A stretch of DNA of 61,976 nucleotides, the filler included, from Choristocarpus tenellus KU-1152 (lineage: Eukaryota > Protista > Phaeophyceae): NCBI GenBank assembly GCA_964200185.2. It is 5 parts of 5 records of this genome, joined end to end, with 100 filler letters (N's around TTAATTAATTAA, not from the genome) between each part and the next. Parts side by side here need not be neighbours in the genome. Positions count along the whole stretch, not along the records: positions 25,451 to 56,316 come from CAXNAD020000087.1; 4 more parts are not named here. One strand, written 5' to 3'. A model generated the notes under the pieces. It was not told the origin of the DNA. It ran no database searches and saw only the letters and a list, made by a program, of their open reading frames with translations. Position 1 is the first letter of the stretch. Each line of letters starts with the position of its first letter. This document shows positions 22,769 to 48,500 of the stretch, in pieces. The position numbers were made by a program, and so were the translations under genes.

Positions 22769-24211
22769 ATGAAGCAGGTGCTGCTTGCCACCCTGGCGGC
22801 AGCAGCCGTAACGTTAGGGAGTGCCTTCCACCGGGGCCTTTCCTCCACCCTCGCACCCTGTCGGCGCCATGGGATTGCTTTGCTGAAGGTGACCAGGACC
22901 ACACTACTTCATGGCTCTCAAGCAGCGCACACGAGGACCCACCACAGGAGGCTTCATGAAGACTGTTGTGCTACCTGGAGGTCTTCCTATCCGTTGACTG
23001 CTTTTCGAAGAGATATAATTGATGGTGGATATGGAGAATTACAGGGGGAGGGGGGGTATGAAATGGAAGACGGCCTCAATCCATCTCAGCAGGAGGCTGT
23101 TGTATCTCCCGTTGGACCCGTACGCGTGGTGGCGGGCCCGGGATCCGGGAAGACACGGGTCCTTACACGAAGAGTGGCTCATCTGGTGAGCTATGACTCA
23201 ATAAGCTTTCGCCTTTTCGCACGAAGGAGGTTGAGAGATCCTAGTAGTCAGTTGACGGGCAACGAACTCTTCTGAAGTACCTTGCAAGACCTGGCTAACC
23301 CGATTTCGCTCCCTGTATGTACTATTGACCACTTTCCCGTGACCTTGTGAAAATTATCCAAGGTTAGGAACTTGTCGGCCCCCCCATGGTCCATCCTGGC
23401 CGTGACCTTCACCAACAAGGCAGCAGCAGAGATGCGTGGAAGGGTAGCCAAAATTCTTGGCAAGGACGTCACCGGTCAGATTACCCTTGGGACCTTTCAC
23501 AGTGTATGCGCTCGTCTAATGAGGAGGTTCGGGGAGCACCTTCCTGCACTGATCCCGGGGCTTGACCGTCAGTTCACGATATTCGACACGGACGACTCCC
23601 GCAAACTGGTCGCCGAAATTATCAAGGAGATGGGACTGGACTCTACCAAGGTCATGAGAGAGTCTGCCATCTCCATTTATTTTTCCTAAGCCATCCTCAA
23701 TCCCACTCGCTTCTTGCTTCATACTAAGAGACTGCTTTATAATATGTAATTGTGTGTCCTGTTAGAGCGCTAAGTACCTTATGTAGGGGTCCTTGTAAAT
23801 GCTTATTACTTAAGCATATTGACACCTCCCGCTGCAGTTCAAGATCAGTTCAAGAAGATAAAACAACTGCTGTCCCTCTTTTATTTTCTCCTCTCCTATC
23901 TTGCATTCTGTTTCAATCCTGACTGCCGTGGCGCCGCTCTCGGCGCACATGTCCTTCCTCAAAAGAACAGGTCAAGCCGCAATGGTTCATCTCACAGATG
24001 TCGTGGTTGAAGAGTCAGGGGAAGGGACCAAACGACGTGATGGAGTTAAATAAGGGTAGGGGGGGAGGTACAATTTCAGCAGAGAAAAAGAAAATGCTGA
24101 AGACCTTGGCAGAGCTTTTTCCCATCTATCAGCGGAGGCTAGCTGAAAGCAATGCTGTTGACTTTGACGATCTGTTGTTGGTGACACTTCGCCTGCTGAA
24201 AGAGAACAAGG
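22769..24211 (+). CDS. uvrD: UvrD/PcrA/Rep superfamily-1A DNA helicase, probably plastid-targeted, 3'-partial; exons 22769-23185, 23363-23650, 23971-24211
   Basis: Q-motif LNPSQQEAV, Walker [15 protein letters not shown], motif Ia [15 protein letters not shown], Ib [15 protein letters not shown] and NAVDFDDLL. The N-terminus [19 protein letters not shown]|F is a signal peptide plus an ASAFAP-type motif. Confidence 0.93.
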
Positions 24212-24552
24212 GTGAGAGCTGAAAGAGGAACAACTCTGTTGATAGACATAGCTCCATTGTAGTAAGTGTGTTTGGTAGTATCTTATGTGATAGTACTCTT
24301 TTCGTGTGGGAGACTACAGTGATGACTCATGCTGAGGACAAGTTCATATCTCACTACTCTTATCTCATGAACGACCACCCCTAAGACATACTGCTTGCTT
24401 GACTTGACCGATATTTTTTATATTTTCATATCTTTTTTTTTGTGCGTGTGTGTGTGTGTCCCTTTTTCAATTGTGTTGCTGCTGTTTGCCTGAAACGCAC
24501 TAGTTTTTGATCAATCTGTCAACCTCCTTGCCTCTTGCGACCACAAACAACG

Positions 24553-24601
24553 ATGCCGTGGGCATGTCATGCCGTGGGCATGTCATGCCGTGGGCATGTC
24601 A
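24553..24601. repeat. 3 x 16-bp tandem repeat ATGCCGTGGGCATGTC
   Basis: Read directly from the sequence. Confidence 0.9.
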
Positions 24602-25350
24602 GGTGTATGTATGTTGCATCATGTCATCATATCATCATGTCATGGGCTCTCATGCTGTGATGTTTTGTTTCTCACATGCCAATGCCCACGCAACTGTACT
24701 GTTGTCACTTTTTGATTGTAAGGTACGCCATGAAGCCCTAGTCCAACCAAGGAGGGTATTGATTTAGTTTGTAGAAGTACTTTTTTTCAGGTGAAAAGAC
24801 AGATTAGTACATATCGGAAACGGGTTTCACCATCAGGCATGTAAATAAATAAATAATAAAGAAAGAAAATAGGTATTTGCTAGTAGCGCATACATACATT
24901 GCAACCACTCCAAGGGAGTTGCAGTCAGTTCCATGCCAAGAGAGATCGTGCGCAATTTATCCTTGCGGAAGCTGCCACTGTTCTATCCTCGGCAGCTGCC
25001 ACTATTTTGCAAAGACATTTAGACATCCCAGGAGCACCAGAGCGCTTGGTCTCGCACACACCATTGATTTTTAGAGCTCCAACTACTGGGCAACTGGATT
25101 GATACTCTACCTGGCATCAAATTCTGGACCTTTTGGTCGACTCGCCTCCATCGGCTCTTGTGTCCCACTTCAATAGACAACGAGCCCAAATACAGTTACG
25201 CCCAGCACATGCTCTTACTATAACAACAACCACTACCCGGTTTACCGCCCAAGCTCGCCCGCCCGCCCCTACGTCAGCATTGCTCTCCCCAAAGTGCGAG
25301 AATAGAGCCCTTTAAAAAAAAAAAATGGAGAGGCTGCCTCGCCAATAAAT

Positions 25351-25450
25351 NNNNNNNNNNNNNNNNNNNNNNNNNNNNNNNNNNNNNNNNNNNNTTAATT
25401 AATTAANNNNNNNNNNNNNNNNNNNNNNNNNNNNNNNNNNNNNNNNNNNN
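25351..25450. other. Artificial contig linker
   Basis: Same construct. Confidence 0.98.
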
Positions 25451-28400
25451 GGAGTGGTTTGGGTCAATCGAGGAGATGGTGAAGGTCATTAAGAAACAGT
25501 ATGAGTAAGATGAAACCACACTTGAGAGGGCTTGACAGCTCTTTTTTGTGGTGTACAATCAAGTACTTAGATACAAAGTGGGGAATGACTTCAGTGTGGA
25601 GCACACAGTGGTAAGGAAGAGGAAGTTGTCTGGCGAGCTTGGCAGCTTGAATGAAAACATGCCGAAGGTAGACATGGAGACTTTTTCTGTGGCTGATAAA
25701 GTTGTGATGGATGGGGAGTAATAATAATAATAATAAGAGCTGACCCTAGCCGGAAATTCATCAAGGATTCCAAATCTTCCAGAAATGAATTTCATCACCT
25801 TCAAAAGTTATGGACAATGTGGCACAGACTTAGGCACAGTGGTAGTATATTATTATTTTGTTAGTATCACTATATACTCGGGAGGAAGATGTTGAAGGGG
25901 TCTATATACCTTCAAGGTATCTAACAAACTTTTCTATTGTGATATTAATAGGTTGGGTGAGTAAGACAGATGAGATGGTGTTTGTTTATCTTTATGTTTT
26001 GGTACTGGATATCTTGATACTTCTGTTAGGGTTAGGACTAATTTGGTGATAAGCGGGGACTAGAACTTATTTAGGCTAGTGCATTGTGTTCTATACCTGT
26101 TGTGTTACCAACTGTGTTGTGTTTGTTTATTTTTATGCTTAATTTGTTACAACTATGTGTTTTTTATACATCATTTTTGTTTAGTGGTGTGTTGCTGGAA
26201 GATACTGGAAGTAAAGGTAATTGTGGTGTTGATGAAATGGACTCTACCTGTGGTGCCAAATGTGTAACAAAACATTCATGATAATGGAGAAGCATTGACA
26301 AAGGGTGGGATGATTTCGATCAGTGTTGTTACGTTGATTATCATGTTTTTGATTACTGTTTTGATTATTTTAGTATGTTCATTACTGGTGACACCAAGAG
26401 GACTCCTTCTGTGTTAACTGTAGTGTGCTGTTACTATTTAAATTGATTGTGGTAGTAGTTACCTTGTTTAGGCTATGGTTAAGGATAATGTGATGAGGAC
26501 AGAAGGATTCCCAACTTTGTTTCAAATTGTGTTTCCAAGCACGTTATTGACTGTCAGTGAGGGTGAAACATGATGGATGTGATGTGGTGTCTATAGAGGT
26601 GATAACGGTGATCATGGTGTGATGAGGGTGCTACTCAAGTCCCACCAACAGTCTTTGTGTTGTGATATTATGATGTTTACTATATATGCTGTTATCTTGT
26701 TTTGTTACATGCTGCAAAGGAGGAAGAGGAACAAGATGATGATGATGGCTATGAGGATGATGGGTGGGACTTTATGGATATAGAAGAGTACCTGGAGCAA
26801 GCAGAGGAGAAAGAGGAAGAGCCAAAGATGGAAGAGTCCAATGAGGCCAATGCTGACTTCATGAGGGGTCACGCTCAAATGTACACCAAGCAGGCAATTA
26901 AGGCTGGGGCGTCCCGGATTGTGAACCGTGCCATGAAGGACGGCTTCAATGCAATGAAAAACAAGGTGGGGTGACATTTTCTTCATTTTTTAAACTAAAA
27001 AAAACATTTATGTTAGTTCTACCAGTGTGAACATAATAGTAATAATCTTGTAGTTTTAAGAAGCAATGCTTGCAATATATAAGGTTGAGGTCGGCTGTTG
27101 CCACTGAGTCATAAATGGTCCACATAGTTAATATTTTTGTATAGTTAAATATTAGTGGATAGTGGAGATTGTCAACAGGACAGTTCTCAGGTGTTGGGTG
27201 CTTGGTGTGAGTGGAAGTTGCAATGTAGTTCACAGATCATGAATTCAGAATGATTTCGAAAAATCTCTTACTTAGCTGTGGATCAAAAGTGTTCCAACTT
27301 CTTACGTATCATGGAATGACAACCTTTTTTTGTCAAACCTAGGGAACTACATCGTGGTGTTGCTTTCAACTGACCAACCCTATCCCTAACTCTACCACAA
27401 GTTGGTGTTACTATGTATATACAATATACACTATTATTATCTTCCTGCAACTGTGACATTACATCAAGATTAGCTCAAACACTATTTTCATAACTTTACT
27501 ACTGCCTTTGCCTGCTGTGTCAATATTTTTTCAAAACGTTGAGTGTCTACAATGTGATGCTACTAATATTAATATGTTGATTTCTTAACCCTAACCCTTT
27601 GGTCTCTAATATACTGGTCGATTACATGATCTTTGCAATACAGAAAGAGGTAGAGAAAAATACAATGTTAATTATGTTGTGACAGGTTATCCTTGGCTTA
27701 GCTAAGAGGTGTAAATCCTGAAGCTTTATCAATAGATGCATGTTAAAGCATTCTAGATATTATTATTATTATTAGATACGTGATTTATGTGAGGGATAGA
27801 TGCAGTTTACAGCTTAAAGAAAAAATAGAAAATTTAATCTTGATAATAATTTAGAGATGTTGGAATTTTCCGATTGCCCCAACTCTATGTTTTATTCTGA
27901 CTGCTATTATATTTTGATACTGTTAATTATATTCATTTATCTATGTGCAACTTGACGTCCTTCTCTCTGTCTTTTTTCTTCTCTGATTCGAGCTGAAACA
28001 CTGATCTCTCAACTTCAACTTCAACTTCCAACCCCTCCACTGTACTCATACAATATTTATATATTTTTTTGTGAACTGTTTTGTCTTGGTGTGTAATTTA
28101 GTGACCCCTTGAGAGATAATGTATCCAATTCAATGTGGAAGGTGGACCGACAAGCAACCATTTTATTATTATTGTTATTATTGTTTTGTTCTCACTTATT
28201 CTAGAAGTACTACTTTACCTCCTACATTGGGTAGGTGGTGCACATACAGCCCTATCTTTTCCTCACTCTATTCTAATCCCCACCCCAGCTCTGGGGTGTA
28301 AAGAGTAAAAAGATAGTGATGTTGGTGTGGTGCAAAGGCCCTCACCTTGCCATCCAAAACAGTCCTTTCAGGAATTGAAATATTTTGTGGGATTTGAGTG

Positions 28401-31400
28401 TTAGATGACAGCTCCACAAGAAAAATATCAGAAGATAAGAGACAAGGACTTGTACTGGTATATGCTACAAGTGTAGAAACCCTAACTCATATCCTCCCAA
28501 AAACATCCCTAACCTTGAAAGGTAAGAGGTGACAGTGAGTTCAAATGGTACATGCTTAGGGTGCACAAGCAGAAGGAGCTCTACGTGAGAGACAACATTG
28601 TCAGTCAAATCAAAACATGGGGATGGGAGCACAAGGTGGATGAGCTATTTGTTCCCACCAAGAAGGTTGGTGCTGGAATTATTTCTTTATTTTTATTTTG
28701 GTATATGTGAGAAAAGGAAGGAATGACAAGCAAAAGGAAACCTGAAGCCTCCCTCCCAGTATAATATGATGATAATAATAATAATGTAGGGTTGTATGAT
28801 ATGATATGATATGATATGATATGAGACTATTCAATGGTACAAGCCACGGAGGGTAGGTACCCTCATGTACCATGCAACATGATACAATACTAGAAGTCAT
28901 ATGAACATGTACCTCAATTGTTGAACCTTTATATTGAGGCTGGTGGAAGGATCACACTGGATAGGAAGGATGTGATTTATGTGTATGTTGCAGTAGATAT
29001 GATGAGAGGTCAAAGAGTTGTCATGCAAACTAGTACTATTAAATTCAAATTCAAATCAATGTAGATGAAAAAAAAGCTTGTACTTGTATTAGTTACGCTA
29101 TATTAAAACATGCCACCCTGTAGTACAATGTTATTCAACAGGTCATAAAATGATGTATTACAGCATGCAACACGCACCTAACATATTAGGAAATCCAGCG
29201 CACATGAGTACACAACATCGTATCAACTCCTTACATCGTTGTGTTTTGATTTGGGACAGAGGTTCAACAACCAAGGCAAGGAAGTCACCTTTGTGGTGGA
29301 GCCCATGCATCCAGCCTATGTTTACCTCCATGCCACTATGGACTTAGAGGTAAGTTTGTGTGTGCGCATGGTGCATGTGTGTGTGTGAGAGTGTCTTTTT
29401 TGAACACTAAAAAGTGAGTGGTGATGTCAAGAATGGGATAATAAATTATGCCATGGGTGATGATGTCACTCACAATTGTTACACTACTCTATGATTGGAT
29501 GTGTTGGATGTGCATGGTGTAGCCCTAGCACTGTTAATAGTGAAATATGAGTGAAATGGTTTAATCTTATTATTATATGATAGTGAATTACATTATTTTT
29601 AATTGTATCTTGTCAGTGTTGTGATGACCAAGGTTTTGGTTTGCCATATATTTAATATTGATGGCTCTACTTAATTGAACCTCAAGGCCTGTTCCTAATT
29701 GGAAAATTGCATTGATTTTTTTGGGGCTTTTTTTTGGAACTTGAAAAGGGTCATTTCTGTAAATACAGCGATGACATTACACCAAGAGACTTGGATTTGG
29801 TGTAATCTGTTTGAAGTATTAATTTCAGGAGCATGTTCTGTTCTTCTTTTGAACCACTGGCCAATGGGAACCCCACAATGCAACTTCTTTTCAGAAGAGT
29901 TCAATTTTTGAAACCAAGGTCACTTGACTGGCCTCAGAAGCATCTCAAAGAATTGCCATATTCTTAGTGGTCTTATACTCTGGTTAATAATATTTGAACG
30001 TTCGTCTTTTAATATTACTACTAATAATAATACTTCATAGTGATAATCAACATCGTTATGATCTTCACACTATCAATACTCTGCTTTCAAAACCCCTGGG
30101 TGGATGTTTGCAATATTATTATTTTAATTCAAATTTATTTATATGTTTATATAATATTGATATTATAATGATCTGTTGATGTACTTTGACACAACTGATT
30201 GATTTCCCCTTTGTGATTGAGAACAGCTCCGTGACAGGATCAACGATATGGACAAAGTGGTTGGGTTTGCTGGAGTGCAGAAGGATGAAGATAAAAAGCT
30301 TATTCCCAAGGCAATGTCAGATGCTGAGATTGACAACATCAAGGAAACAGAGGCCAAGTTCAGGGCCGAGCCAGAAGTGAGAAATAAATCAGTACCCCCT
30401 GGAAAGTAAAAATATATGTTCATGGATCCATATATATATATATAGGAAGAGAAGCATTCAAATTTTGGAAGTATAGCAATTATTTTTTCATCTAGGGTAA
30501 TGGTATCATAGTTGTTGCTCTTGAAAAGGAATGATAATTATTTTTGTTTTCATCATGCCACCCGACGAACAATTGACATAGTCATCAAGACCAAGAGATG
30601 TTTAGAGTTGTATATTGTGACAATATTTATAATAATAATAATAATAGGTGCATCACATTACATTGTCTTTATCGTGTTGTTGTTTATGATTGGTTAGTTT
30701 AATTTGGCGGGGTGAGAACTGATTGTCAATTTGTTGTGATTGACGAGGACCTAATTTTGTGCTACCTTGATAAAGAGATCAATGTTAGTCATTATTAGTC
30801 AATATTAGTTCCAAAGAACGAAACCAAGTAGTCACTGGTTTTAAAGCTGGTTTGTTTCTAACTGTTGCACTCTGGTGTTAGGATTAAGGTTAGGGTTAGG
30901 ATTAGGTGTTGTTCACTCTGGTGTTGTTCACTCTGAATATAATATTAACTGGTTGACAAAAACATGGGAATGGTCTAGGGTGGGTAGAAGTATGTAGGTA
31001 TGTTTGCACCAATCTTGTAGAAGGCGTTATCCAATTTGTACCTTCTACCTAAGAGCGATTGATACCTATTAAATTATTAAATTACCTTGGAATACTTTCC
31101 TGGATATTTCTGCTGTCTGGAATACTTTCCTGAAAATGTCTGCTGTCTGGGTGATGTCTTATGTCTTGATTCAAGCAACATCAGTACAACCTCACCAATT
31201 TCATTTTTTAAACTCTTACTGAGGTTGTATATTTGGGGATTAAAATAGTTAAAAAGAAAAGTAATAATGTGACAGATTAAAAATTTTAAAGCTTGTCCCT
31301 GCCATTCTTGACTACCATGTACATTTTGGGGCATAGATGTGCTAACAAACTAGCTCTGCTTTGCTACAAGTGCAAGGCTCATGCTGCCATCTGTCAAGAA

Positions 31401-33161
31401 CGGCAATGGATTGTAAGGACTCCAATTCAGTTTTTTTTTTAATGAAACTGTAGATGTTTCGAGATGACTCTCTCATAACCCCCTTGTTTTTTGTTGCATA
31501 TTTTGAGTGATAACCCTGATCATCTTGATTGGAAGAAATAAAAGCAATAGACATGTCTTGTCACTGTACCAGTACACAAACATATTCCCATACTTTTTTG
31601 TGCTTCACTTTTTTTTTCTAGCGCAAGGTGATCAACAAGGGTGTCATGGTGGAGATCATGGAAGGAGGCTTCGAGGGTCACAAGGGGGAGATTTTTAAGG
31701 TCAAGGAAGGTGAAGTGAACAAACTTTGGGAATGTAAGATTGATATTAGTATGAGTATTAAGGTTTGTGTTAGTATAATCAGTTCTTGATACTTGATGAT
31801 GTATCAGTTATGGAGTTGAGAGATGTACTTTGAAGTGTAAAAAGCTCTGATAATAATGTTAAAAGTCTGAAACCTAACTGTGATGTAATTGAACATGCTG
31901 TTGATGTTATTTGAATGGAAAGGACAGTATAATTATGTCTTACGTCTTATACCCCATACTTTGTCGTAGTGGGTGAAGGGGTCAAATGGTGTGTTGAAAC
32001 GCTGTTATTTTTAACACCAGCCTTGAAAAATGAATTACTTAGTTCTTGTGACTGCTTATCTGCTTTTGGATGATGAGGTAACCAATTTGAAAGTCTTCCC
32101 AACTAGGAAAAGGAAAAATATATGTTGTTGCTACTGCCTTCGACTGTAAACTGAGGTACACATTTTATTGGTTAAGTTTATGTTTTTGATAATGTGACTA
32201 CCTGGTAAAAAATTGGTAAGTATGCTGTGTTTCTATTGGTGTTGTTTGTTTAAAAGGAATGTACCACATCTGTTTTTTGCTTTACACCCTCCTGTATTGT
32301 GCTTTCTTATCCCTCAAACAAGAGTCAACTTGTACACCAAACCATTTTGAGCATGAAACTGTTATTGGAGATACAAAGTCAGGCTGTGCCTGTTGCCTGG
32401 ACATGTTGGGATGTATTAAATTTTGTTAACAATATTTGATGTTTAAAAAAAAAAGATGCATCACCACATCGGGTTTTTTCTCTTGGTATAGGTAATGTGA
32501 TGTAGATATATGTATGCATTTTTTAAATTTTTCCCTACCTATCATTGAAATATTTTAAACTTTCATGAAACATATTATACATCATAATAATTGCTAATTG
32601 AAGTTGTATTCTGTACAGTTACTCTCCTGTACCTATATCTAACCATGACATCATGTTGAATATTGATTTTAACTTGAGGCAGTGAGGGTCTCTGAGGCTG
32701 GGATACCATTGGATAATTGTGTTGGGTTATTTGTCTCTCTGTTGTGTTACATGAAGTGTGAAGCATGATGTAGCAGTTCCTTGTCCAACACCCTCATACG
32801 TCTAAGACAGGCATGTAAACATTCATACACAAATATATATATATATATTTATTTACATACAATATTTCACACAATTGCATACTGATTTGTTATTATGTGA
32901 CAGTTTACAGTTACAAATTATAATACAGTCACAGTGTCATGAACAGTGTATGAAGAATCATGTTAACAAATATGGAGTATATATGTATGCGTTGCCCTCT
33001 TTATGAAATTTTTGGGGGCATTCAGATAGCAGATGGGAGCCCGACTTGTATGATATTTTATTATTTAACATTTCTTGTGAGTTGTAAACATACACTTGAA
33101 TCAAATAATTCTAAACATAAAGTGAATTTAGGGTATTAGACTTCTTTTGGAAGTTGATCAG

Positions 33162-33192
<31 letters not shown>

Positions 33193-36100
33193 CGTATCAC
33201 TTTGTAAGTACCACTGTTGATACAGCATACAGCCCTATGACCTCATTCACACTGAAGTGTCACTACCTGTTGTATTACTACTATTACTACCACTGTTAAT
33301 ACTACTACCTCATCACCTCATTACCTCATTCAAAACATAATACATCCTTGTATGTCTGCATTATAGGTGACCCTTTTATCTTGAATCACACATTACCTTT
33401 GTGTTAGTCTTTGTTAACCAGTGCATGTATATGTCTGGTAGTGCTTCTTGTAGAACATACAACAGGAGATGGGGATGTCTTGTAGTGATCTGGTAGTGGA
33501 GAATTAACTTGCTAAAATTGTGTAAAGTCAAAATGTTTGCTCCTCCCTCCATCATTGTCCATCATCATCCATCATCCATCAAGTAGGGAGACACTTAGCC
33601 CTGTGCTGCCCTGCTGACTTCATTTAACTTCCTACACTCTTTACTTGTATATAGTGGAGTATAAGACTGCTAGTATATTTTTTTAGAATGTAGTGTGTGA
33701 AGTTTGTAAATCTTTGTCAATGAGATAGTCCATGGCATGTTTTTCTTTGTAATCACAACACTCGTAGTATGTATTTTTAATATAGTACTTCCAACTTCTT
33801 CTGAGTTTTATTGTTTAATTTATTTTTTAGCATCTTCATTCACATTTAATTTCAACTCTTGTACTCATCATGAATGTAAATAAAATATATAAATAATATA
33901 TATATATATATTTCTCGATGTATGTTGGTATGTGTCTATTTGTATAATAATGATGTGATGTGAAGATGGGTATGCTGTGAAGATCTATGCCTATGGGAGA
34001 AACACAGATGTGGAAGTATCATGGGATGGTGTGAGGAGGTTATCTGAGATGGAGATACAGGAGTGGTTGGATGATACAAAGCAGGTAAGTTAAAATGTAG
34101 TATGACCAGAAGAGTTTCTTTCACCTTGGGGGAACTAAGAGTAGGTCCATTTTGGGGCAAAGGCTAGAGTTTGTGAAAATGCTGCACTACTATGGAGATT
34201 TGATTGAGGATATGATATGATATGAGTGTTTGGAGTTTGGGTTATTAGTAGAGACTGTCTGCTGTTTTGAGTATTTTTGATAGTATGGTTTTAGTTGGGG
34301 TTTATTGAATTGTGTCTTCAGTAGTGCACACTGCTTGTACATATTTGAGGTAGGCCTTGGCTTGCTTGCTTTTAAGAAAATTGAGAGGGTGAGGTACTGT
34401 ATTTAAACTGTAAGATAGCTTGTCAGCAGGTTTGTTTCATGGATTGTGTACTTAGGGAGGGTTGATCTGATCAATTTGACTGGACCAAATACAGGGTTAG
34501 GGTTTGTAGTTGGATAAATCATGGTAACAGGTTTGTGGCTTGTATACAATACAACAATAAATAACGTTGATAGGGTTAGGGTTATGGTTAGTGGTTGGAA
34601 GAATCAATATTCAAGGAGCAGGGTGTGTTTGTGTGTATGGTGTTATTGAGTACCTTCCTTGTGTACAACGTCCTCCCACTTGTCATAGTGATAATGACTA
34701 TTGACTATTGACTTCTCAATACCTATTTTTGTTAATGTGGTAATCTATTGTCATCAACTCTACACTTTTGGAGGTTCAAGAGAATGGACGAGTATTTTCT
34801 TATTGTTTAAAGTTGATTGTGAACTTTTGTGCTGATAATTTTCTTGAAAGAAAATTATTTTTCCTTTTCATCACCTATTCAATAAGGAGTTGTAATATTA
34901 TGTACTATCCCAGGTATGTGCCTTTTAGACCTCCTATGATTCCCCTTTTATTTTTTATTGTCATGTATAATGTGATGTACTGTATTGTATTGTATTGTGT
35001 TCACTGTATACCCTCTGTATAAAAGGGGTCTGACTCAGTTTTTGTTGCACTTGTCAAACAGCAGCATTGACAAATAATATTAAAACGTTGTGATTTTGTT
35101 GTGGTGCTTTTGAGAGGCTAGGTACCCTTTTTGACAAATTGTTTAATTTTAACTAAACGTTATATTTTTTTATTTTTTATTTTCATGCTTTTTGTTTTTT
35201 TCATCACCAATTAGTCATTTGACACATTCAGGTTGGATTGTGATTGTGATTGTATACATACAGGCAATAGATGCAACCTACATGAAACGTCAACATCAAA
35301 GTACAAGGAAATTTGTTGGGAGGGATGAACGCAAGGTCCTGTTGGGGGAAGAGGCACAGCAAGCAGAGGAATACCGACAGCGCTATTTCCAGGAAGGACC
35401 AGAGAGGCATATGCAAAGGAGAAACGGATACAATGAGGACATTAACAGTGGTCTTGGAAGGAATGAATATCCTCGTGGTCGTGCTGGACGTGGTAGAGGA
35501 AATAAAGGAACTAGGGGGCGTGTTGGGGTTGGTCGAGATGGAAGAGGTGGAAGAGGGTCTATGGGAGGATGGAGTGAGGGTTTGTTTGATCAGGATCAGG
35601 CGATCTTTGAGGCTAGGCAACCAAAGTCCCGCAGGTTTGTGTCCATTTCTTTTTTTTTGTTCAAAAGTGGTATTATTAGGGTTAGGGTTATTATCTCATT
35701 ATTATTACATTAGTAATTTTAAATAGCTTAATGAATTTATTGTTGTGCGGTATGAATGTGATATACTAGTATTTAAATAATAATCACTATTATGAGATTG
35801 TTGTGTACCATTCTGTAACCTATGTATTGTAGCATCTGATGTGAATTTGTTTCTGTTATGTGTGTGTGAATGATGATAATATATAATAATGATAATGTAG
35901 TATTAATATTAATAGTTCAATATAGACCACATACCAAATTTATTAGTTTTCACTTGCTGATGTCACAGGGCCTACAATTGAAGTCAAGTTTATTAACAGA
36001 CAAGATAATTTTTATCCCTCACAGCAAAGGGGTATGGTCCATGAAAATACAAGTAGTACATGGTGTGATACAATCCATAATACTATGTTATTATTTCTCA

Positions 36101-39100
36101 TGACAGTATATATATAGTACACTATTATTAGTAGTATTGAATAACATGTTTACCTCCAGCACCAGTCCCACTGTCCTTTTCTGTATGTTGTTGGTTGTCA
36201 TGGTCATGGTGGAGTTGAAGGGATAGGAAGTTTTGAACACACTATGAACATCCTTTCATTATTCACAATTACATTTACATGATGGTTTTTGATTCCTGTA
36301 TTTCTTTTTCTGCAAAAGATACAGACTCCTGGGAGAATAAAACAATATTATTCAGTGTGTGCCTTGTACTGGAGATGGGTTCATAATTATGATAATATAA
36401 TATATGCTTACTTTATAAATAGAGCTTACACTACTATTAGTACCAATGTGTGTGTAGTATTAGTACTTATTGTCCAAGTTTGCTAACAACCAGAAATACA
36501 GTGTGGTCATGGACTTACATTTTGACTAAAATCACTTGGATTGAGAAAACAGTATCTTCAACTTGGTAATGTAAATTTCCATGCATTTTATTTATTAATA
36601 GTGAATATAGAACTGGATGTGGACAGGTCTAGAGGTTTACCAAATTTTTTTGGTGGATGAAAGAACAATTCCTCACAAACACGCAAGGTACTCACATTTT
36701 TTTTAACTATTTTTGGTTTTATTGTAGTTAATGTAGTTTGGAGTATCCTATTCTATCTTGCCAGTATTCCTGCAGTACTCCTCCCATGTGGTCTTGTGCA
36801 TTGTGATGATTTTTCGTTTGATTTTGTTAGGGTATACCTTTATTTGGTTATCTATTAGAGTTATCTATTCTATTCTCTCCCCCTCACGTTGTCTTTGGAA
36901 TATACAAAAGTTTATTAGTTGTACTTTAGTTAATAATACCATTATTAATATGTTGTTGCATTAGTATCTGTACAGTGTGTACCTCACTATAAAAAAAAAT
37001 TTAGCATTAAGTGACAAAATGACATATTAGTATTTTGTAGTATGAGTAGAGTACAGTGGTGAACTGCAACTAATGTACCACTTGTGTAACACATTACATC
37101 ACATCACATACACAGGGATACACAGCCGGAAGGGGAGGATTTGGACAGGCTACTTCCAAATGAGGCATTTGCAAGCAAGGAGGATGCTGATGATTTCTTC
37201 AAGAGGTAATATTCACATATGCAAGACTAACAGGAGGAGAATTGTTTCAAAATTGATCATGGTCCATTCTACACAACTGGATAATATCTTGTGTTGGGCA
37301 TTCATTATATCACCAAGTGTTTATACATGGCAGATGGAGTGAAGATCTTTTTTGGACTCAATAAGTGGACTGCTAATAAGAGGCCGATCTTGAATTTGAC
37401 TATGAAAAGTTTGATACATTTTGGGGTGTAATTGTTCCTTATCCTCTTTAACTAAAATCATCCAGACCAAAGTAGTGTATCATGGATCAATATCAATATC
37501 AATATCCAAGGACAAAGAGTACAGGTCTAAATAGGTTTGTAATTTAGTAATATGATATGTCTATTGACTATTAAGCATAAATAGTGTCTGTGAAAGCGAT
37601 CATAAGTGGTGTATTGAATGTAGGATTGAATTATCTGACCATTTCTGATAAGTAGTTAATATTTTCGCCTGTCCCTCATTTTGTTTCCCTTTGTATATTG
37701 TTTTTTTGAGTAACATTATCTCACCTCTGTGAATAGCAACAGTATCTCCAGGAAAAATTCATTATTGGAGGACATTTCTTTGATAATTGTGAGTTTCATG
37801 GAGATACACATAGAATGTTTTATACCTACTTGTGTTTAAAGCTGTTTAAAATTTTCACAAAATATGTAAAAGTCAACCTTGTGTGCTCACTTGAACCCAT
37901 ATCAGAACCCATTTCAAAAATCATGTCAGCATGGTACTATATTATAATATAGTGTGAAATGAAGTGTGCTATTATTGTTGGCACTAAGTATGTACAAGTA
38001 CATGATCTGTTTTTGATAGTAATAGTAGTTGTTGTAGTAGTTGTAGTAGTTCCAACACCGATGGTAATATTTGATAGGAAGTGCGTGGTGCCTCCTCAGG
38101 TCTCTCAGCATGATTGGTTTAATCTACAGGCACAGGTACATAGAGTGATAGATATGGATAGATATGGATGATGGACAGTTTTGCTATTTGAAGAAGTACC
38201 TCCTCAAGATGGTATTGATTGGAGGTGACAAGGTAGGGATAAGATGTGTGGGGGATGATTGTGAGGCCAAGCACATTTAGAAGGGCATGTTCATTACTTC
38301 TCTAGGTAGACCACCATGCACTAGATTGTTGTAGATATTGTCTTTATGTGTGAAACTTTGTCCAGCCCTGTAGCCTTTCTTCCTTTGAAAGGTCTAGGAT
38401 ACTAATCATGAATTGTCAAACAATTTTGTTTTTGGTTCTTTGGCATGTCCCTTTCTGTCAAACACAATCCCACAGTCCCCTCTCCTTTCCTCTCCTCTGC
38501 CCTATGCTGCTCTGTTCACTTGACTCACAAGTCTGGATGGAATACTAAGCGAATTTGATGATTTTGATTCAAAGGACAACAAACGCCTACCACAGGTGTG
38601 TGGAACACACAAACCCTGATTTTTTTCCCCTGGGTCCAAGTATACCAAATATCTTTTTCAGGTGGGTTGAAACACCCACCTACTGCTTTCATAATATTAA
38701 TAGTACATAGTGTTTCCATGTGTACTAATAGAATGCTGTTAATTTTTATTATTATTACTAGTAGGCATGTTATACCTTGGTTGACAGGTAATACTCAGGG
38801 ACCATTAACACATACATGACAAATGGTAATGACAATGAGACTATTGATATTATTATTATTACTGTTATTGTTGTTATTTTGTTATTTGTAACTGCGTGTT
38901 TCAAGATTTAGGATGCAAAGGAAACAAGTTCTCACTCTGCCTAATTTGTTCATTATTCTGAGTACCAAAATATTTTTATATTGCAATTGTGATGGTGAAA
39001 TAGGACCTATTTGTTTGTCTTTCCAACCAACAACCAGTAGTGAACATTATCAACCCTTCTACAGAGGGGTGTCTCAGGGGGAGAGTTCCTAGGTGGATTT

Positions 39101-42100
39101 TCATATGTTTCAAGTGAGGAGAAATACATGTACATACACCAAATGAACCTTTTTATGGTACTGATTATGGTACTGGTGACAACATAAAAACAATCGATTA
39201 TGGGAAGAATAATCCTTTGCTTTGTTGGTACAATATACATAATGGTATTATCCCCAATGACTTCCAACAATGATAATTTCACCATCACATGAAACCCCTC
39301 TCTCTTCCACCACCCACAGGCTCCTGGTGCACGTCAGGGACCTTTGTCTGATGTTGAAAGAGTGCATGCTAAGGCTGCAGCAAAGAAGGAATTGTTAGAT
39401 TCCTCCCCTTCCCCATCACCTACAGTAGGGCTCAGCTCCACTTCTAGGTGTGATGTTGATAGATATTAAGCAAAAACGTTTGGAGTGTTTTAATACAGGG
39501 TGGTCGTGGTTGTCATGCCATGAGGAAATTTTTGTTGATGTACTCTTACTGTGTGATCTCTTCTTACTGCTAACAGACACCCCACCTTGTTACGTTGTCT
39601 GGTGAAATTTTATGTTAAATTGTAACATTCCCTAACCCTAAAGCAGTAAAGAATTGTAGCCCACTCCGGAACTTTAGCCTTGAAAAATAAATTGATACAG
39701 TGCTGACTGCCCTACCTGGGGTGTTCGTCCTTAATCCTGCCCTCCTCTAACTCTGAAGAGCATTTTTTATGCCCAGGATTGTAGCTAGCTCTAGAGGGGA
39801 ATTCTTGGATTGGTCATTGTATAGTAATACAAGTTTGTCTCAGGTGAAGCTTATATTGGCCTCATTTTTTCCCACAGTTGAGCATGGCATTAATATTTGT
39901 ATAGTAGGCATTTCCAATATATACAGTGTATTGATGGTGAAGTATGTGTAAGATAGATGTCATCCCTAGAGTAAAGAGGTGTTAAGTTAAGTTAGTCTTA
40001 ACCAATTTGTAAGGTGCTTCACTTCTACAAACAGTTAACTACTGTACTGCTCACTTGTATACTCAACCTGGTTTACGTCATGTTGTCAAGCATTTTCATT
40101 CAATTGATACAATCATTGATGTATCACACTTGTGGAAAGGTAATTGCGATACATCATAAGTACATCAGTCAATTTGATGTCGCACCAATGATCTAGGTAC
40201 TCATCCACATTATCCTTGGAATACCTATTAATACACACTCATGGCTCATGGACTAACTGAATAATTAAAAAGTTTAATTATTATCAATGTTAATGTAATG
40301 GTGAAGCCGGTTGGCTGGTTGTATCATATTCTCAAGCCAAGGCAGAGGTAAAAGAGAATATCACCAATCCTATGGAATATCCTATGGATTTCAGTTTGAT
40401 TAATTGGAAATGAATCGCTACAATTCACAACATACCTTGATTGATATAGAGAGAGAACCTTTACATCTCCATGTGTTGGACATCTTTTATTTTTATACAA
40501 TACTATAATGACCTGTGTGTTACATACTTGATCAGCAATGGTGGTTACCCTAACACTTGAAAGAGATTGTTAGGGTTAGTTAGGTGGATTGACGGTTTGT
40601 AAAGCTTGATATCAATTGTATCTTCATGCCATGTGATTTGTGAACATTATATGATCCAAGTACCACCACAGTATCGTATCAACTATCAACTATTGACTTT
40701 GATGCTGTGTCTGATACCATACACTGCCTCCAGGCTAATGGCAGGTGCTGGAGCTGACTCAGCATACTGGGATGGAGGAGATGATACAATTGCACCTTCT
40801 TGGGATGGCACTGGTGGTGACACTGTTCTCCCTGGTGATTCTTCTGTTAGCAGTGGGGGTGGAGTAGCAGAAGGAGGGGGGAGGGGGGGAGGGGAGATGG
40901 TCAGGGAAGATGAGCAAGATCCCATGGCAGCATTGGCGTTTGATGAGACTGGTGATGACGATGACTTCTTCAAGGTATCTATGTATCAGTTACATAGTTT
41001 TAACATCTTTGGTAATCATATATTTGTTTTGATTGTGTTTCATTGTAGTATTAGTGTTAGTACTAGTAAGGGGTAATGGTGTATGTGTTGTCCCTTAGTG
41101 TGTACCATTTGTGTCCACTCCTCAACTTCTATCAAACTGTAACTGTCAAACATACTGTGTCACCCACATTCACTTTTCATATACTGTATACTGTTTAACA
41201 TCTATTTATTTTTTACTATCAATTATCAAGTAGGTACTAATGTATGAGATATACATATCATTTCCCCTAACCCTTACAGGCTCTCATGGCGGAGTTGAAA
41301 GCACCTCCTTCTGCCAAGGTTGCACCACCTAAGAGACCTGTAAGTGGTGTGGATGTTGATATGGGTATGGGTACAAGAAACACAAGAAACACTAGGTGAG
41401 TTGTCGTATACATTGTGATTTGTCATCCGTCTTGTGATGATCGTTTGGAATGAAAATACTGACTGGAGTGTAAAGGGCAATTTTCCTTGTTATTTTTGTG
41501 AGGTAATTAATATATTAATACATTAATACATGATCAGATCGCAGGGCATCCAGACGACATTGAAATAGTTATGGCCTGGAACCAGCCCTGTGAGAAAAAT
41601 CTGATGGCTCGAAAAGCTAAGTTTTATAGAAGGGTTCGTCTAAGCCGATATATGCTAGCCTATGTGTGAAAAATTCAATACATTCTCACTTAGCGTTTGA
41701 ATAAGCAAGTGCCATGGACACCTTCCTTTTTGTATGCAGTTTTGTTGAATTGAACACTTCACATGTGTGTGTGGTGATGAACTTCTGATTGGAAGGTTGA
41801 CATGTATTCGTGCAATTCTGATGGGTAATCTAAACATTGGTAGTAGTAATCATAGGTTCAAGTAGAAGTAGAATGTATGTCCCTCTTTCCTGTTTATAAT
41901 AAATTTGAACAGTCTCCTTGATACGATTATTCCCTTGTCAATTTCATTGGTACTGTTAAGTGTTAATTGTATGCATACTTTGTACTTTATGTCTGGACCA
42001 GACCATCAGATTGAATGATGGCCCTGGGCCAGCCCTGCGACAATACAGAACCCATTCTGTACAACATTGCAGTCCGGTAACTAGTCAGGTAGCCCTACCT

Positions 42101-45100
42101 TTATTTATTATTGTGAGAATACATCAGCACTATTAATGGTAAAGGTGCAAACTCTGTCTCCCCCTTGACAACAGTTTTGTTATTATTATTAGCATGTTTA
42201 CAGTGTAACACACCAGTTACAGATTGTCATTCAATTGGTTTATTCTTAACTGTCAGAATTTCATCAAATTTTAGATTATCTGTGTTGTTAGAAGTCGTTC
42301 ATTCACCCACCCATGAACCAGTTGAGATAATTATTGTTTATTTTTATTTAGCAGCACTCTAATATATATTCATATATATTCCTACCAGAGGTCTAAATGA
42401 AGTATCAGAGGAAGGGAACAACAATGAAGACTGGCTGGATGGACCCCGTGTCAACAGAAATGCTAATGCTAATGAAAACACGAATGGAAGGCGTTTTTCT
42501 GGTAGCAAAGCAAGAAATGCAGCTACAGGGATGGGGGAGAAGTGTGACACAGATAGTGATTTCAGAAGTTGGGGTGATCTGGGTGACCTGGATATCGACT
42601 CACTTGACATTGAAGAACTATTGGGAGGACCTGGGTTGGATGGTGTTTCTGAAGGGATTTCCACTGATCCTGAAGGTGGTGTTGGTGGTGCTAGCAGCAG
42701 TCCTCCTGTGGGTGGTGGTCGTGATGGTTCTGACAAATCTTCTTTGGTGTGTATTATTGATTCATTTTGGTATGCTTGTGTTTTCGTGTTTGATGTGATA
42801 GTTTTTGTTTTGTTTTATGTGCTCTTCTGTTTCCCATTGTCAGGAAGGCGTGTAGAATTACTCACTGACTAGTTATGTTTCAAAGTAAAATTTTCCTACT
42901 ATTGATATTAGTATTATTATTAAACCATTATTAAACGTTACTGGTACCTCTTTGGACTGTACATTATTAGTAGTAGTAGTAGTATTGTTACTTGTCTGTG
43001 TTCTTCTCATGTGCTGCATTGTACCTATAAGAGTTAACTTCCTACATGTATTTTGTCAGAAAATTAATTTATTTTTTATGTGTGTGCTCTACTCTAGAAA
43101 GCTGATCAGTTTATGTGTGCCAGAATACCATACAAGATACTACCGTCTAGTATGTGCAGTGCAGTGATCTATTGCACTACACTACTGATAAGTTGATTGG
43201 GAACTAACTTGTGCTGTACTTCTCCCTGTGTGCTGAACATACTCTTGTTGTACAAACAAAAACATGTGAGAGATACAGTACCATCTACAAGGGGGGTATT
43301 GTTGAGAATTAAGGACCTCTATGACGATGACTTTATTGTCATACAGATGTTTTGAGCACTGTGGAGTAAGTACACTTTCACCTATCAAACACTATTCACA
43401 GCTGATTTTCTCTTTTTTATAATCATAGCCTTGTAAGGGTTAGGGTTAGATATAGCTGCATTTCAGGCGTAGGTGTATTAATAGTGTATAATTCACCAAG
43501 GTTTGAAGAGCTTTTAAAAGTCAAAACAGACAAAATCCCCCCCCTGCTGAGATTGTTTTTCTTTCTATCCAAGTTTTTCTATAGCTATTTTATTTTTTAT
43601 ATTTATTAATACCTCACTCAATTCAAGTCGTTTTAAATTGTGTTCCTGTAACCATCACACTAGCAACGAGAGGATATTATATAGTACTTACATACTTATA
43701 TAGTTGCTTCAAATGTTACAAAATAACACATCAACCTTTACTAGTTGATGTTAATTGTTTATCAAGTAATTACTTTTGACATCATAGTAACCTTGACATG
43801 AATCCATCACCTCCCAAGGTCAATGATGAGTTAAGATATAGAAGAGCCGATGTGAGTGTGTTTGTTGTGTGTTAGGAGAAAGTGAATACATGAGATGTGT
43901 GAATGTTGTGATGTTGAGTAAAGCGAGTTACAAGTATCCCCTTGTCCAGTAGTGGTGGTCCAACATGAACTGGAACCTGTGAACATATGTTCTTAATAGT
44001 GTAAAAATAATGCTTACAGAATGGTCATTTGCTTTTTAATCCCCTGCCAAACTTTACCTTTGTGTCCAACTCAGGGGATGAGTGGATTTGACAGCATCCT
44101 TGCTGAATTGGACAACATGGCAAATGAACCTGCCAATATTGGAACTGGAACTGGAAGTAAAATGGGGACTGGGGCTGGGACTGGGACTGGAAAAGCTTCT
44201 TCACTGGATACTTCTCACCTGGACAATGTTTTGGCAGAGCTCTCAGGTGTTGCACCCAAGCCTCAGAGAGGAGGTAAGCCTCGGGTTTGGGGAGATTATG
44301 TGGGGGATGGCAATGTAGGGGGTCGAAGGGGAGGAAGAGGAGGAAGGGGAGGAAGGATCCAGCAGCAACAGAACCAACAGTTCAATACATGGGATGATAC
44401 CAAGACCTATTTCAGGGGTGAAACAGAAGGTGGGACCAGTTATCGCACAGGACCAACTCCAGGTCCTAACTCTAGGCGTGCAGTGGATAGGATGCTGCCC
44501 GTGGAACCAAAGGATGCTGCCCCGCCTGGAGGATTCTCTGACATGGATCTTCTTAGACCAGAACCCATCTCAGATGAGGAGGAATGGATTTGGGATAAGA
44601 GGAAAAATGGAGGTGGCGTTGGGCAGGTTGAGGGGCAAGATGGGCAAGATGAAGACTATTTTAGTCAGCAAAGAGAAAAAAAGGTAGAACCTGTCTCAGA
44701 ACAAGAGTTTGATTTGTCTATGCCAACCCTCAGTGATTCAGTGGAACTTCCTCATGGGGAGCCAGATGTCTATGTTAACCCTCAGCCTGAAATGAAGCCA
44801 GCAGTAAAGGAGAGTGTTGCTTCTATTACAAAGTCAGATCTTGAGCCAGCTACTGATCCTGTTGAGGACCCAGTTATGGTTGATGTTTCTACAAAGGCAA
44901 AGGCAAAGGCAAAGGTCCTATCCACTCCACACCGAAAAAAAACTGTGAAGAAGGCCACTGCTAGTTCTTCTACTGCTACAGAGTCTACACTAGAACCAGG
45001 TGGACAAGGGATAGGTGGTGATGATGCAACCAAGATCAAGGCAATGAAGGTGAGGAGAACTAAATTTTGTTTTGGGTTTTCTACGCATGATCTGTTTTTC

Positions 45101-45591
45101 TTTGTTCATGGCATCATTTAGTTACTTCGTGCTGATCAGTTGTAATGGAGTTACAAGTTTTTGAGGTAAGGGGCACAATAACTGTATTTTATCTCCAGAG
45201 AGACTCTCTGTGCTGATACGATGAGATATGTACTCCACAAATACTGAATCAATATTTGAGGGAACCAAATGTGACATTTCCATGTTTTTCTGCTGTTGTT
45301 AGGGTTAGGGTTAGGGGTGCCACTGATAGCCAGCCCCTCTCACTTTTTTCTACTTCAGATGTATTGACCTTGAAATTGGGGGACACTAGATACGGATGTA
45401 AGTCCAAAACTGATACAATAGATTAATGCCCATGTGTTGCATTGATTCAGTCATTGGGATGCTAATCCTTTGTATTGGGAAACACTTCAACATTGCAGGT
45501 TGTGGAGCTGAAGGCAGCTTGCAGAGAGAAGGGTTTACCTGTGAGTGGAAAGAAGGCGGAGCTGCAGGAGCGCCTATTAAACTCTTTGTGA
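25451..45591 (+). CDS. nusG: NusG-family transcription elongation factor (NGN+KOW) with a long RGG/acidic disordered extension and a C-terminal SAP domain, 5'-partial; exons 25451-25504, 25571-25667, 26720-26965, 28522-28665, 29260-29349, 30227-30376, 31622-31709, 33966-34084, 35264-35634, 37116-37205, 38532-38595, 39320-39447, 40734-40974, 41280-41395, 42389-42746, 44075-45049, 45499-45591
   Basis: NGN: FKWYMLRVHKQKELYVRDNI...DELFVPTKK...EPMHPAYVYLHATMD...DKVVGFAG...PKAMSDAEIDNI. KOW: KGVMVEIMEGGFEGHKGEIFKV...VKIYAYGRNTDVEVSWDGVRRL. SAP: IKAMKVVELKAACREKGLPVSGKKAELQERL. All 16 introns are GT-AG with matching phases and no stop until 45589-45591. Confidence 0.85.
40183..40260 (+). repeat. Dispersed short repeat with a second copy at 54243-54323
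   Basis: ACCAATGATCTAGGTA(C/G)TCAT...AT(A)CACAC(AC)TCATG...GACTAACTGA is shared between the two loci. Confidence 0.65.
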
Positions 45592-48500
45592 TGATGACTT
45601 GAAGGGGAGGTTTTGTTTGGAGGTCTCTGTTTGGTGGTTGTCTCCTTTCTGTCCTCTTGCACTTTAGACCCTGCCACACAGACAGGGTGTTTACCAGAAG
45701 TACCTGCATTATGTGGTTTGAGATTGCTTTCTTTTTCATGAGATTATAACATACAACAGAAACAAGAATGATGGGTTGTCTACCTTAGAGCTGGTCTTGT
45801 TTCCTGACAAGGAGTAGGGAAGTGTCACATGCAATTTCAAACAAGTATACCTGCATCCATGGGGGACAATAGCATGGTTATGACGTAGAGGAGCAAGGAG
45901 TTTGTTAAAGTATATCTGTTTATGGTTTGTGGAACTTTGCTTGTTTCCTTCTTTTTATTTACTTCATTTTTGTTTTTTTAGGTAAGACAGTAGTGACAGA
46001 CATTCAAAACTTAACCCTAGGCCAACAGAGGCAATGGGCGGGTGGGTGGATGGATGGGCCATTACTACTCCTTGAGACCTTTTTGTTGTCTACACGTGGT
46101 GTGACTGCATTGTGCAGTGTATTGTTTGTCAGAGTTGTCAACCTAGAATATGGGGGTGTAAGGTTGGGTTTGACTTTGCTTTGGGATTGAGCTTTAATGT
46201 GAGGATTAGAGGGCTAGCTAGATCTACCATTTGCCTCTCAGTTGTGAGGTTGGGCTCGGTGAAGATATACACCCTTGGCTCGTTACATCTGTAATTTGCA
46301 GGAAGTTTTCCCCATAACCTGTTCTGTAGAAATTGTGTTGGGATCTATTGCTTCTTGAGCCAGCTCACATCATACATTTCATTTACTTGTATTGGCCATG
46401 ATCTCCTTTCCCCTCGCTGTTGCTTACCATAGAATAATACACAGAATCACTTTACTCAGGCAGAACAAGGTTGCATTGAGAAATCCTCTTTCAAGTTCAT
46501 GAAGTAGTCTGATTGTTGTGAGTAGTGAGTATCACTCTTTCCTTGTTTAAGTCTTGCCACATTCTTTGTTGTATATGGGTATATATAGGTATCAACTAGT
46601 ATACATACACAATGTCATTGGTTCAGGGAACGTTCAAGACCTGATGGCTATGGTGTTTGGGTCCATATTGTTAAACAAGATGTTCTGAATGGTACTCTAC
46701 ATGCTTGGTACATCCATTTAGCATACCTACTAGGCAATTAGATGTGGTAGGCATAAGAAATGTTATCAAATCACATGCCATGAGTTGCAGATGGGAGGTT
46801 GTGGATGTTCCTTTCTGCTTATTTTCTCTTGGTTTCTAGCAACTTGCTGAATGCAGGAGAGGTATGTATATATACTTAAATCACATAACAATTTCTGAAG
46901 GCGCAATACTTGTTTGTACAGATGATGTATGTGATAGATAGCATAGCATGCACAATTTGACAAGGGGACTAGTGGATTGGTTTGGAGGTTAGAGGGTAGG
47001 TAAAAAAAACAATGTGGGTGTATTGAGGGTGCATCTCCAATCTGAGCTGTTCTGGGGAAATGATTAATGCTTCCAGGATAAGATAGTGAGGGATTTAGAT
47101 TTCAAAGCAGAGTTGGGAGCCATTATTTGATGGTACAGAATTTATCTTTCTTTTGTCCTCCTTGTGCTATTAACACTCAAAATATACTATGGACTAGATG
47201 AATCAAAAGGATCTAAATGATAGAAAAGGCTAACAAACCTGCATGTTCTCAAGAAGCATAATGTACACTGAAGGAACTTGGTGGGACCATTGACTGATTC
47301 TGATTCGTTGCATGTAGTGTGTAGTGGATAATGCTGGCAAATAATCAATGTGATGGAGAATATCAAGATATACCTTATGAACAAACATGAATTGGGAGCA
47401 AGGAGAGGCAAAAAACTGATCACTGTTGTGATAGGGATGTCATTTGGCTTCATCTTTGTTATCATCTGTTTTAGTTGTAAATATTATTGATAAGTGATTA
47501 TTAGTGACATGTTGAAAGTATGTATTCTTGGTATATTATTGGAGACAAAATTTGGTGCTGACAGATCACCTACTGCATATACATGAATTGTTTCACATAC
47601 TTCTAATTCTGTTTTTTTACGATTTAGGTTGGACTAGAATGGCCCATAGAAAAATAACTCAAGAATAGTACTGTAAAATAGCATTAAATATTTGGAAGGT
47701 AAGTCCTACTTTCCAAATCTCGAAATTTCGGGAGCTTTTAGAATGATTGGTTTTTGAGAAATTAGGTTTGCTGTGGCTAGGAGGGGTTGGTTGTTGTTGG
47801 AGAGGTAGTCCCCGCCAGATAGGTGGGTTCAATTTGACACTGTGTGTGTATTGTGTATCCCTTGTCAAACATTTTGAGGACAAGTCATCCTATTATAATT
47901 GAGGGATCTGTTCCAGTGTTTCCAATTTTGGGTGTTTAGTTGGCACCCCCCCGCCCATTAACTCGGAAATATCTGACTTTTGTCGAGTAAGGAATTGGAG
48001 GTAAGGGGAGCAGTACAATGCTGAACGGTACAACGAATTTCACACATGCCCTCAAAAGTTTCATTCTCAGTCATACCTTGCCGCCAACTAAAGGGAAACC
48101 CTAATTTAGACACCACCGGTTTGCTAGGTGATTTTGAGTATTATTCTGGGCTTTTTGAAAACCTCCTGGCTGACACCCCTTTTTCTACCAGTGTCTGGAA
48201 TGTGTTTAATATGATTACGATGAGGAGCGACTAGCACAAGGTCATGATTCACTCATACCAACAAAAACGTCACACATCAACTTTCAATACTAATACCAGG
48301 TCATCTACTGTAGTGTGCGGGGGGTATTCTCAATAACCTCCAGCATCTAGCAACATTCCCAAAAATGAAACTAATATTATATTTGGTTCATCATGCATTT
48401 CTTGATCTACAACCTAGGAGAGATTAACCAATGTGAGCATGTCTTCAAACCTCCATAGCAACACCTCACACCCCTACATTCATCCATCTAGCAAAATAGT

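Follow-up and report, generated by a model that had tools for sequence, protein, structure and literature searches.

A bacterial-type NusG gene of the brown alga Choristocarpus tenellus that probably continues into an RGG-bearing disordered tail with a terminal SAP domain

AtNusG (pTAC13) is located in chloroplast nucleoids together with the plastid polymerase and ribosomes, it co-purifies with the SAP protein pTAC3, and its homologues have been reported in 'photosynthetic chromists' (PMC9262611). In that pairing the SAP function sits on a separate chain, pTAC3/PAP1 (bioRxiv 10.1101/2024.10.25.620210). Here we describe a gene in which a NusG-type core and a SAP domain appear to share one polypeptide. 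It lies on the + strand of contig CAXNAD020000087.1 of Choristocarpus tenellus, a brown alga from an early-branching order (assembly GCA_964200185.2). The entire contig (30,866 bp; G+C 32–44%; + strand rich in short exon-like open segments) makes up positions 25451–56316 of the window, that is, of the whole 61,976-nucleotide stretch of DNA that was analysed, and coordinates below are those of the window unless another locus is named. We consider it likely, with a probability of roughly 0.7, that this is one nuclear gene whose bacterial-type NusG is spliced, after the KOW domain, into a disordered tail of ∼780 residues with RGG boxes and a terminal SAP domain, and that its product works in the plastid, where the tail would keep the polymerase at the nucleoid.

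Fifteen + strand exons between 26720 and 45591 join through GT-AG introns into 3,273 nt, or 1,090 codons, the sole stop being terminal (local script on the joined frame). The order in the protein is an acidic stretch, the NGN and KOW domains, a 781-residue Gly/Asp/Ser-rich stretch with RGG boxes and the C-terminal SAP domain, and all parts claimed by a first-pass annotation of this DNA were found where it had placed them. The public model on this contig, P0001 (CAM9123584.1; 548 aa, 'unnamed protein product, partial'), was identified by exact look-up and is 100% identical over the NGN exon used as a phmmer query. Its exons could be mapped exactly, from 25659–25667 to 40734–40878 (12 exons, AG/GT borders), with the last one ended internally at 40878. 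This partial model already unites NusG with five tail exons; according to the project's paper, gene models of this genome project were built on RNA-seq and protein alignments (bioRxiv 10.1101/2024.02.19.579948). The public annotation is empty from 40879 to 50260, which leaves the SAP-bearing exons unannotated in the Choristocarpus genome. Exons are numbered here from 25659–25667 (exon 1) and 26720–26965 (exon 2) through to 45499–45591 (exon 16). For the searches exons were taken singly, joined evidence was drawn from the public proteins P0001, P0003, P0004 and P0005, and the joined frame was checked for length, stops and composition.

The 5' end is missing, as had been noted before: the gene runs off the start of the contig. 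The earlier count was 17 exons and ∼1,140 codons, of which 15 exons and 1,090 codons stand, and the two extra 5' exons (∼50 codons) are plausible from the sequence. These probable coding exons (25452–25667, +) comprise a segment from the contig edge to ∼25505 and an exon ending at 25667, both open frames with GT donors. In this region the public model includes only 25659–25667 (ATG CCG AAG), the first exon of P0001; an RNA contig described below reaches ∼26 nt upstream of exon 26720, by arithmetic on its length. The acidic region preceding the NGN (26720–26965) follows from the mapping of P0001, and comparable acidic exons stand before the NGN in Ectocarpus.

The NGN domain is encoded by exons at 28522–28665 (144 nt; NusG matches, the best PDB match being Aquifex NusG), 29260–29349 (90 nt; P0001 mapping) and 30227–30376 (150 nt), the last of which also holds the NGN-KOW linker with an invariant DEDKKLIP. 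The KOW domain follows at 31622–31709 (88 nt; P0001 mapping) and 33966–34084 (119 nt; donor CAG|GTAAGTTAA). All five lengths (144, 90, 150, 88 and 119 nt) are identical in Ectocarpus. Another candidate for the second NGN exon, 28939–29008 joined to 30222, is phase-consistent, but P0001 and Ectocarpus use 29260–29349, and it was rejected.

On P0001 the Pfam NusG profile (PF02357) matches residues 93–201 with an E-value of 1.6e-9 (38.6 bits versus a cut-off of 22.2), and the NCBIfam nusG model TIGR00922 matches over positions 1–170 of 172 with an E-value of 2.6e-20, whereas the Spt5 model TIGR00405 reaches 19.3 bits, below its cut-off of 69.95. All 12 of 12 PDB sequence matches are bacterial NusG, with alignments that start at the first NGN strand and run through the whole of KOW (query residues 6–179), and there is no Spt5 chain among the 12. 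The ESM Atlas model of P0001 superposes on bacterial NusG clusters with a TM of 0.63–0.70. NusG and KOW signals from single exons are weak (PF00467 on a single exon, E = 0.096), which is to be expected of pieces with 40–60 residues. An AlphaFold2 model of the core from a four-sequence alignment has a mean pLDDT of 54, with only the NGN part at 70–86, and was used for secondary structure alone. The cyanobacterial PDB chain 8syi_G scores below E. coli NusG, which has no bearing on the origin of the core. Judged by its sequence, the core is a divergent bacterial-type NusG and not an Spt5; the first-pass annotation had allowed for an NGN that groups with Spt5, and the profile and PDB matches all fall on the side of NusG.

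Evidence that the core and the tail share a transcript comes from one of three public sequencing runs covering the stretch. None of them is recorded as RNA, and this one (X3) behaves RNA-like, with depths of 87–198 on exons and of 0–4 in most introns. A single 1,325-nt X3 contig at depth 198 carries the GT..AG joints 31709|33966, 34084|35264 and 35634|37116, and its length is consistent with exons 26720 through 37205 plus the ∼26 nt further upstream. The joint 34084|35264 connects the second KOW exon with exon 8 (35264–35634), which has RNA joints on both sides and encodes, immediately behind KOW, the A-I/M-DATYM-K/E-R segment (with DATYM unchanged in all four sequences compared) and then the first RGG/RG box; the single transcript predicted earlier is thereby confirmed from KOW into the RGG tail. 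Across the exon 7|8 junction the A-I/M-DATYM-K/E-R segment does not vary, and in the low-confidence AlphaFold2 model a single helix spans this junction. Loose ends in X3 further place the last 30 nt of exon 30227–30376 before 31622 (exons 5–6), the beginning of exon 38532 behind 37205 (exons 9–10), and the first 28 nt of exon 41280 in frame after ...TTCTTCAAG.

Intron 7 begins GTAAGTTAA (34085–34093), so its retention yields a NusG of normal size that ends two codons after KOW. One could therefore suppose that the gene has several products, a short canonical NusG made by alternative splicing or intron retention being the main form and the long SAP form a minor one; the Ectocarpus donor after the RGG exon, which overlaps a TGA, and a possible in-frame join 37203|41280 that skips exons 10–12 would fit as well. 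We regard this as unlikely. Depth just inside intron 7 is ∼2.6 versus 124–198 on the flanking exons (∼2% of exon depth), hence retention is rare in the X3 sample. Splicing of KOW to the RGG exon is the dominant form there, contrary to the early concern that transcripts might end after KOW. Moreover, conservation of the tail motifs and of the SAP exon extends through the full depth of the brown algae, an argument for their being translated. In the DNA run X1, stretches at 34465–34655, 34847–35228 and 35611–35801 stand at 3–11 times the surrounding depth and many contigs break there; these high-depth stretches in introns 7 and 8 are probably dispersed repeats or transposon fragments.

Between the end of KOW and the SAP exon we count 781 residues (G 14%, D+E 17%, S 8%, six RGG; local script), in agreement with the ∼780-residue disordered linker proposed at first. 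Its first exon beyond the RGG box is 37116–37205 (90 nt, ending DADDFFK), placed by the RNA joint 35634|37116 and the loose end into 38532, with the same length and phase in Ectocarpus. Then come 38532–38595, with the motif SLDGILSEF (P0001; RNA loose end at 37205; SLDSILGED in the same phase in Ectocarpus), and 39320–39447, with a PGAR..GP..VER.HA motif (P0001), which in Ectocarpus is fused to the preceding exon. Exon 40734–40974 is Gly-rich and acidic and ends DDDDFFK; the public model stops within it at 40878, and its Ectocarpus counterpart ends GDDDDDLFA at a GTAAGG donor. Exon 41280–41395, the one reached by the third loose end, begins ALMAELKAPP. For 42389–42746, acidic and Gly-rich with the motif DSLDIEELLGG, there is a sole phase-consistent pair of strong acceptor and strong donor. 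The largest tail exon, 44075–45049 (325 codons), contains FDSILAEL, LDNVLAEL, the second RGG box, FSDMDLL (FSDFDLL conserved in Ectocarpus) and a Lys/Ala-rich end. The tail thus repeats acidic-hydrophobic motifs (DADDFFK, SLDGIL, ALMAEL, FDSILAEL, LDNVLAEL, DIEELLGG, FSDMDLL) that are conserved in kind in both genera and look like docking motifs for some partner.

The SAP domain (PF02037; E = 8.6e-13, 48 bits versus a cut-off of 23.9, model positions 3–35 of 37) is begun by the residues IKAMK at the end of exon 44075–45049 and completed by exon 45499–45591, with the stop codon directly after it; thus the profile check suggested beforehand detects NusG on the joined public protein and SAP on its own exon. 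Compared with the final exon of the Ectocarpus SAP model, the SAP exon shows 60% identity; that model, too, stops immediately behind the motif, and the domain keeps its C-terminal position in Ectocarpus. The last five exons (40734–40974, 41280–41395, 42389–42746, 44075–45049 and 45499–45591) have strong splice signals and consistent phase, and the two borders singled out at first sight, 34084|35264 and 45049|45499, are exact canonical GT-AG borders.

Several points weigh against this account of the locus. The core scores 72.9 bits in Choristocarpus and 80.9 in Ectocarpus with TIGR00922, below the NCBI curated equivalog cut-off of 135.7, and must be called divergent for that reason; it was assigned by profile, PDB and structure matches. 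Exons 13–16 are predicted from splice signals and phase and by comparison with the E. subulatus model. The RNA loose end into 41280 is ambiguous, because two exons, 9 (at 37203) and 12 (at 40974), share the terminal nine letters TTCTTCAAG: it may represent the canonical joint 40974|41280 or an in-frame skip of exons 10–12 from a non-GT donor at 37203. In E. subulatus (Ectocarpus sp. CCAP 1310/34, CACKRE030000058.1, locus L002) the region is annotated as two genes. The gene continues past the contig start, and the Choristocarpus 5' end and targeting signal lie off the contig, while in Ectocarpus the signal peptide and its CEG|FAPP site were judged by eye. Finally, nuclear proteins of the SAF-A/hnRNP U kind typically combine SAP with RGG.

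The transcript and annotation points could be taken to mean that two same-strand neighbours, a NusG-RGG protein and a separate disordered SAP protein, have been made continuous by the choice of splice sites. The E. subulatus annotation has just this form, with a NusG model at 10001–19678 and a 567-aa SAP model at 23990–29646, on the same strand 4.3 kb downstream, and the public model of Choristocarpus, itself partial, goes no further than 40878, short of the predicted exons 13–16. On inspection of the sequence, however, the two-gene picture does not survive and looks like an annotation split of one gene. The TGA that ends the NusG model (19676–19678) overlaps a donor CG|GTGAGC in phase 2, as is the Choristocarpus donor at 35634, and the next conserved Ectocarpus exon has 90 nt and the same phase and ends DADDFFD (DADDFFK in Choristocarpus). 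The ATG that starts the SAP model (23990–23992) lies 6 nt past an acceptor matching that of Choristocarpus exon 41280; behind this shared acceptor E. subulatus has SLMKELKESPP and Choristocarpus ALMAELKAPP, in phase 0 in both. Within the supposed intergenic gap sit, at 90–97% identity, three conserved tail exons that are spliced onto NusG in another alga: P0005 of Ectocarpus sp. 8 passes through the same donor into the 90-nt exon and two more, and ends at a GTAAGG donor because its contig ends. The downstream E. subulatus model spans the remainder, from the exon-13 homologue to SAP. An assembly gap (Ns, L002 ∼20975–21060) falls in the intron that follows the 90-nt tail exon and may be the cause of the split. 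The SAP model has neither a targeting peptide nor another N-terminal feature of its own. In Choristocarpus, whichever origin the loose end into 41280 has, exon 41280 shares RNA with an exon of the NusG model. Two separate genes therefore appear improbable to us.

With one gene as the preferred interpretation, Ectocarpus has the same exons in the same order, and three overlapping models tile the protein from signal peptide to SAP in one frame. The two sampled brown-algal lineages that lie farthest apart share the exon order from NusG to SAP, and the gene is older than the Choristocarpus/Ectocarpus split. Upstream of the acidic region Ectocarpus carries three or four tandem Lys/Glu/Ala-rich repeats (MTPEEKAAKK..ALKRK), one 66–69-nt exon each, at 6837–6905, 7874–7942 and 8885–8950 of locus L003 (Ectocarpus sp. 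12) and at 8967–11097 of L002; no counterpart is visible in the Choristocarpus window, possibly since the 5' end is missing.

Word-based protein searches (whole P0001, P0001 residues 88–285 and P0003 residues 362–580) returned relatives only from Choristocarpus and three Ectocarpus species; they are uninformative on other taxa, because they run on a word index and the length filter (≤959 or 1,139 aa) would hide full-length fused models. When a single 46-aa NGN exon was compared by phmmer with 1.84 billion representatives, only the gene's own protein and one spurious match came back, and the 59 pattern matches to two conserved peptides in metagenome contigs included no relative. In at least four brown-algal genomes the public annotation leaves the gene truncated or split, so that surveys of domain architecture which draw on these annotations would miss it.

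As to the compartment, the N-terminus of the Ectocarpus sp. 12 model is a hydrophobic signal peptide; ...CEG|FAPP comes next, and then a stretch rich in Ser, Arg and Gln. The same signal-peptide exon is present in E. subulatus at L002 7517–7921, 2.5 kb upstream of the truncated NusG model, and was left out of it. Heterokont proteins destined for the plastid are known to carry a signal peptide whose cleavage site has a Phe. The gene itself is nuclear, as its spliceosomal introns indicate. The protein is thus most likely imported into the secondary plastid, a conclusion drawn from the Ectocarpus presequence; the plastid location assumed at the outset is supported by these orthologues, whereas the N-terminus of the Choristocarpus protein is off the contig.

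It is conceivable that there is one gene whose protein acts elsewhere, for example in the nucleus, the bacterial NusG fold having been co-opted. SAP and RGG are common in the nucleus, where matrix and RNA-binding proteins combine them, and the first visible coding part in Choristocarpus is strongly acidic. We give this little credence: the Ectocarpus orthologues open with a signal peptide, then Phe and a Ser/Arg-rich stretch, and the core matches NusG end to end and not Spt5. We know of no other compartment of the brown-algal cell that has a bacterial-type RNA polymerase. The sole such enzyme is the one encoded by the rpo genes of brown-algal plastid genomes (PMC2765969).

In a plastid protein of this kind, homology predicts that NGN would bind the plastid-encoded RNA polymerase and that KOW would contact the ribosome through uS10; E. 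coli NusG does so, and the same is reported of AtNusG/pTAC13. From domain function, the RGG boxes of the tail may contact RNA and the SAP domain DNA, and the tail as a whole might hold the elongating polymerase at the nucleoid. Of the 'tethering device' put forward in the first-pass annotation, the presence of NusG, RGG and SAP on one reading frame stands; the tethering itself would be a reasonable reading of the domain functions. Tentatively, and with less than even confidence, one may go further: since before brown algae diversified, one polypeptide could have combined plastid NusG, RGG and SAP, linked by the long tail with its repeated acidic-hydrophobic motifs, as a tether or condensate scaffold for polymerase, nascent RNA, ribosome and nucleoid DNA, a solution to which land plants would have come convergently with the separate proteins pTAC13 and pTAC3.

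To our knowledge, hardly any work exists on how algae whose secondary plastids are red-derived organise plastid transcription; what is known comes almost entirely from the plastid-encoded polymerase (PEP) complexes of land plants, and algae lack most of the accessory proteins of these complexes. A NusG with its own RNA- and DNA-binding tail makes nucleoid-coupled transcription in brown algae accessible to concrete tests and, if the interpretation is true, would have converged with the arrangement of land plants, in which pTAC13 is paired with the SAP protein pTAC3. We found no description of a NusG plus SAP architecture in the full-text literature (plastid, Ectocarpus, diatom, ochrophyte and stramenopile contexts), in which one kelp transcriptome paper merely lists a nusG label. 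Passages of the brown-algal genome study describe domain fusions as frequent at the origin of the group, and in those passages a NusG-SAP fusion is unmentioned (bioRxiv 10.1101/2024.02.19.579948). What is new is thus a tailed variant of plastid NusG (pTAC13), NusG itself being already known.

Elsewhere on the contig, the next annotated gene occupies 50261–50878 and beyond on the minus strand and encodes a 209-aa product with no Pfam match on record. A tandem repeat array lies at 52818–53052 (periods of 33, 48 and 81 nt; about 3–6.6 copies; 78–97% matches). Rfam returned zero matches within the contig piece.

Among known systems, pTAC13 is the closest protein, likened by domain layout and not by tree. 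Like AtNusG/pTAC13, the Choristocarpus protein is nuclear-encoded and has a bacterial-type NGN with a single KOW; pTAC13, however, has ∼330 aa and ends soon after KOW, whereas here ∼810 residues follow KOW, with RGG boxes and SAP. Bacterial NusG (TIGR00922; PDB 2jvv, 1m1g) is matched end to end over NGN and KOW, but the score is 72.9 versus 135.7 bits, the gene is nuclear and split by introns, and N- and C-terminal extensions of several hundred residues are added. With Spt5 it shares the combination of an NGN-KOW factor and a long disordered C-terminal region, a possible platform; Spt5, in contrast, has several KOW domains and pairs with Spt4, and with only 19 bits to the Spt5 model the present protein is not a member of that family. 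It joins DNA-binding SAP and RNA-binding RGG in one chain as SAF-A/hnRNP U does, a resemblance in logic only, proteins of that type being nuclear, with SAP at the N-terminus and without a NusG domain. Finally, as with pTAC3/PAP1, the SAP- and PPR-bearing subunit of the land-plant plastid polymerase, a SAP domain would be brought beside the plastid RNA polymerase; pTAC3 is a separate chain with PPR repeats, no PPR motifs are present here, and the two are best seen as analogues, not homologues.

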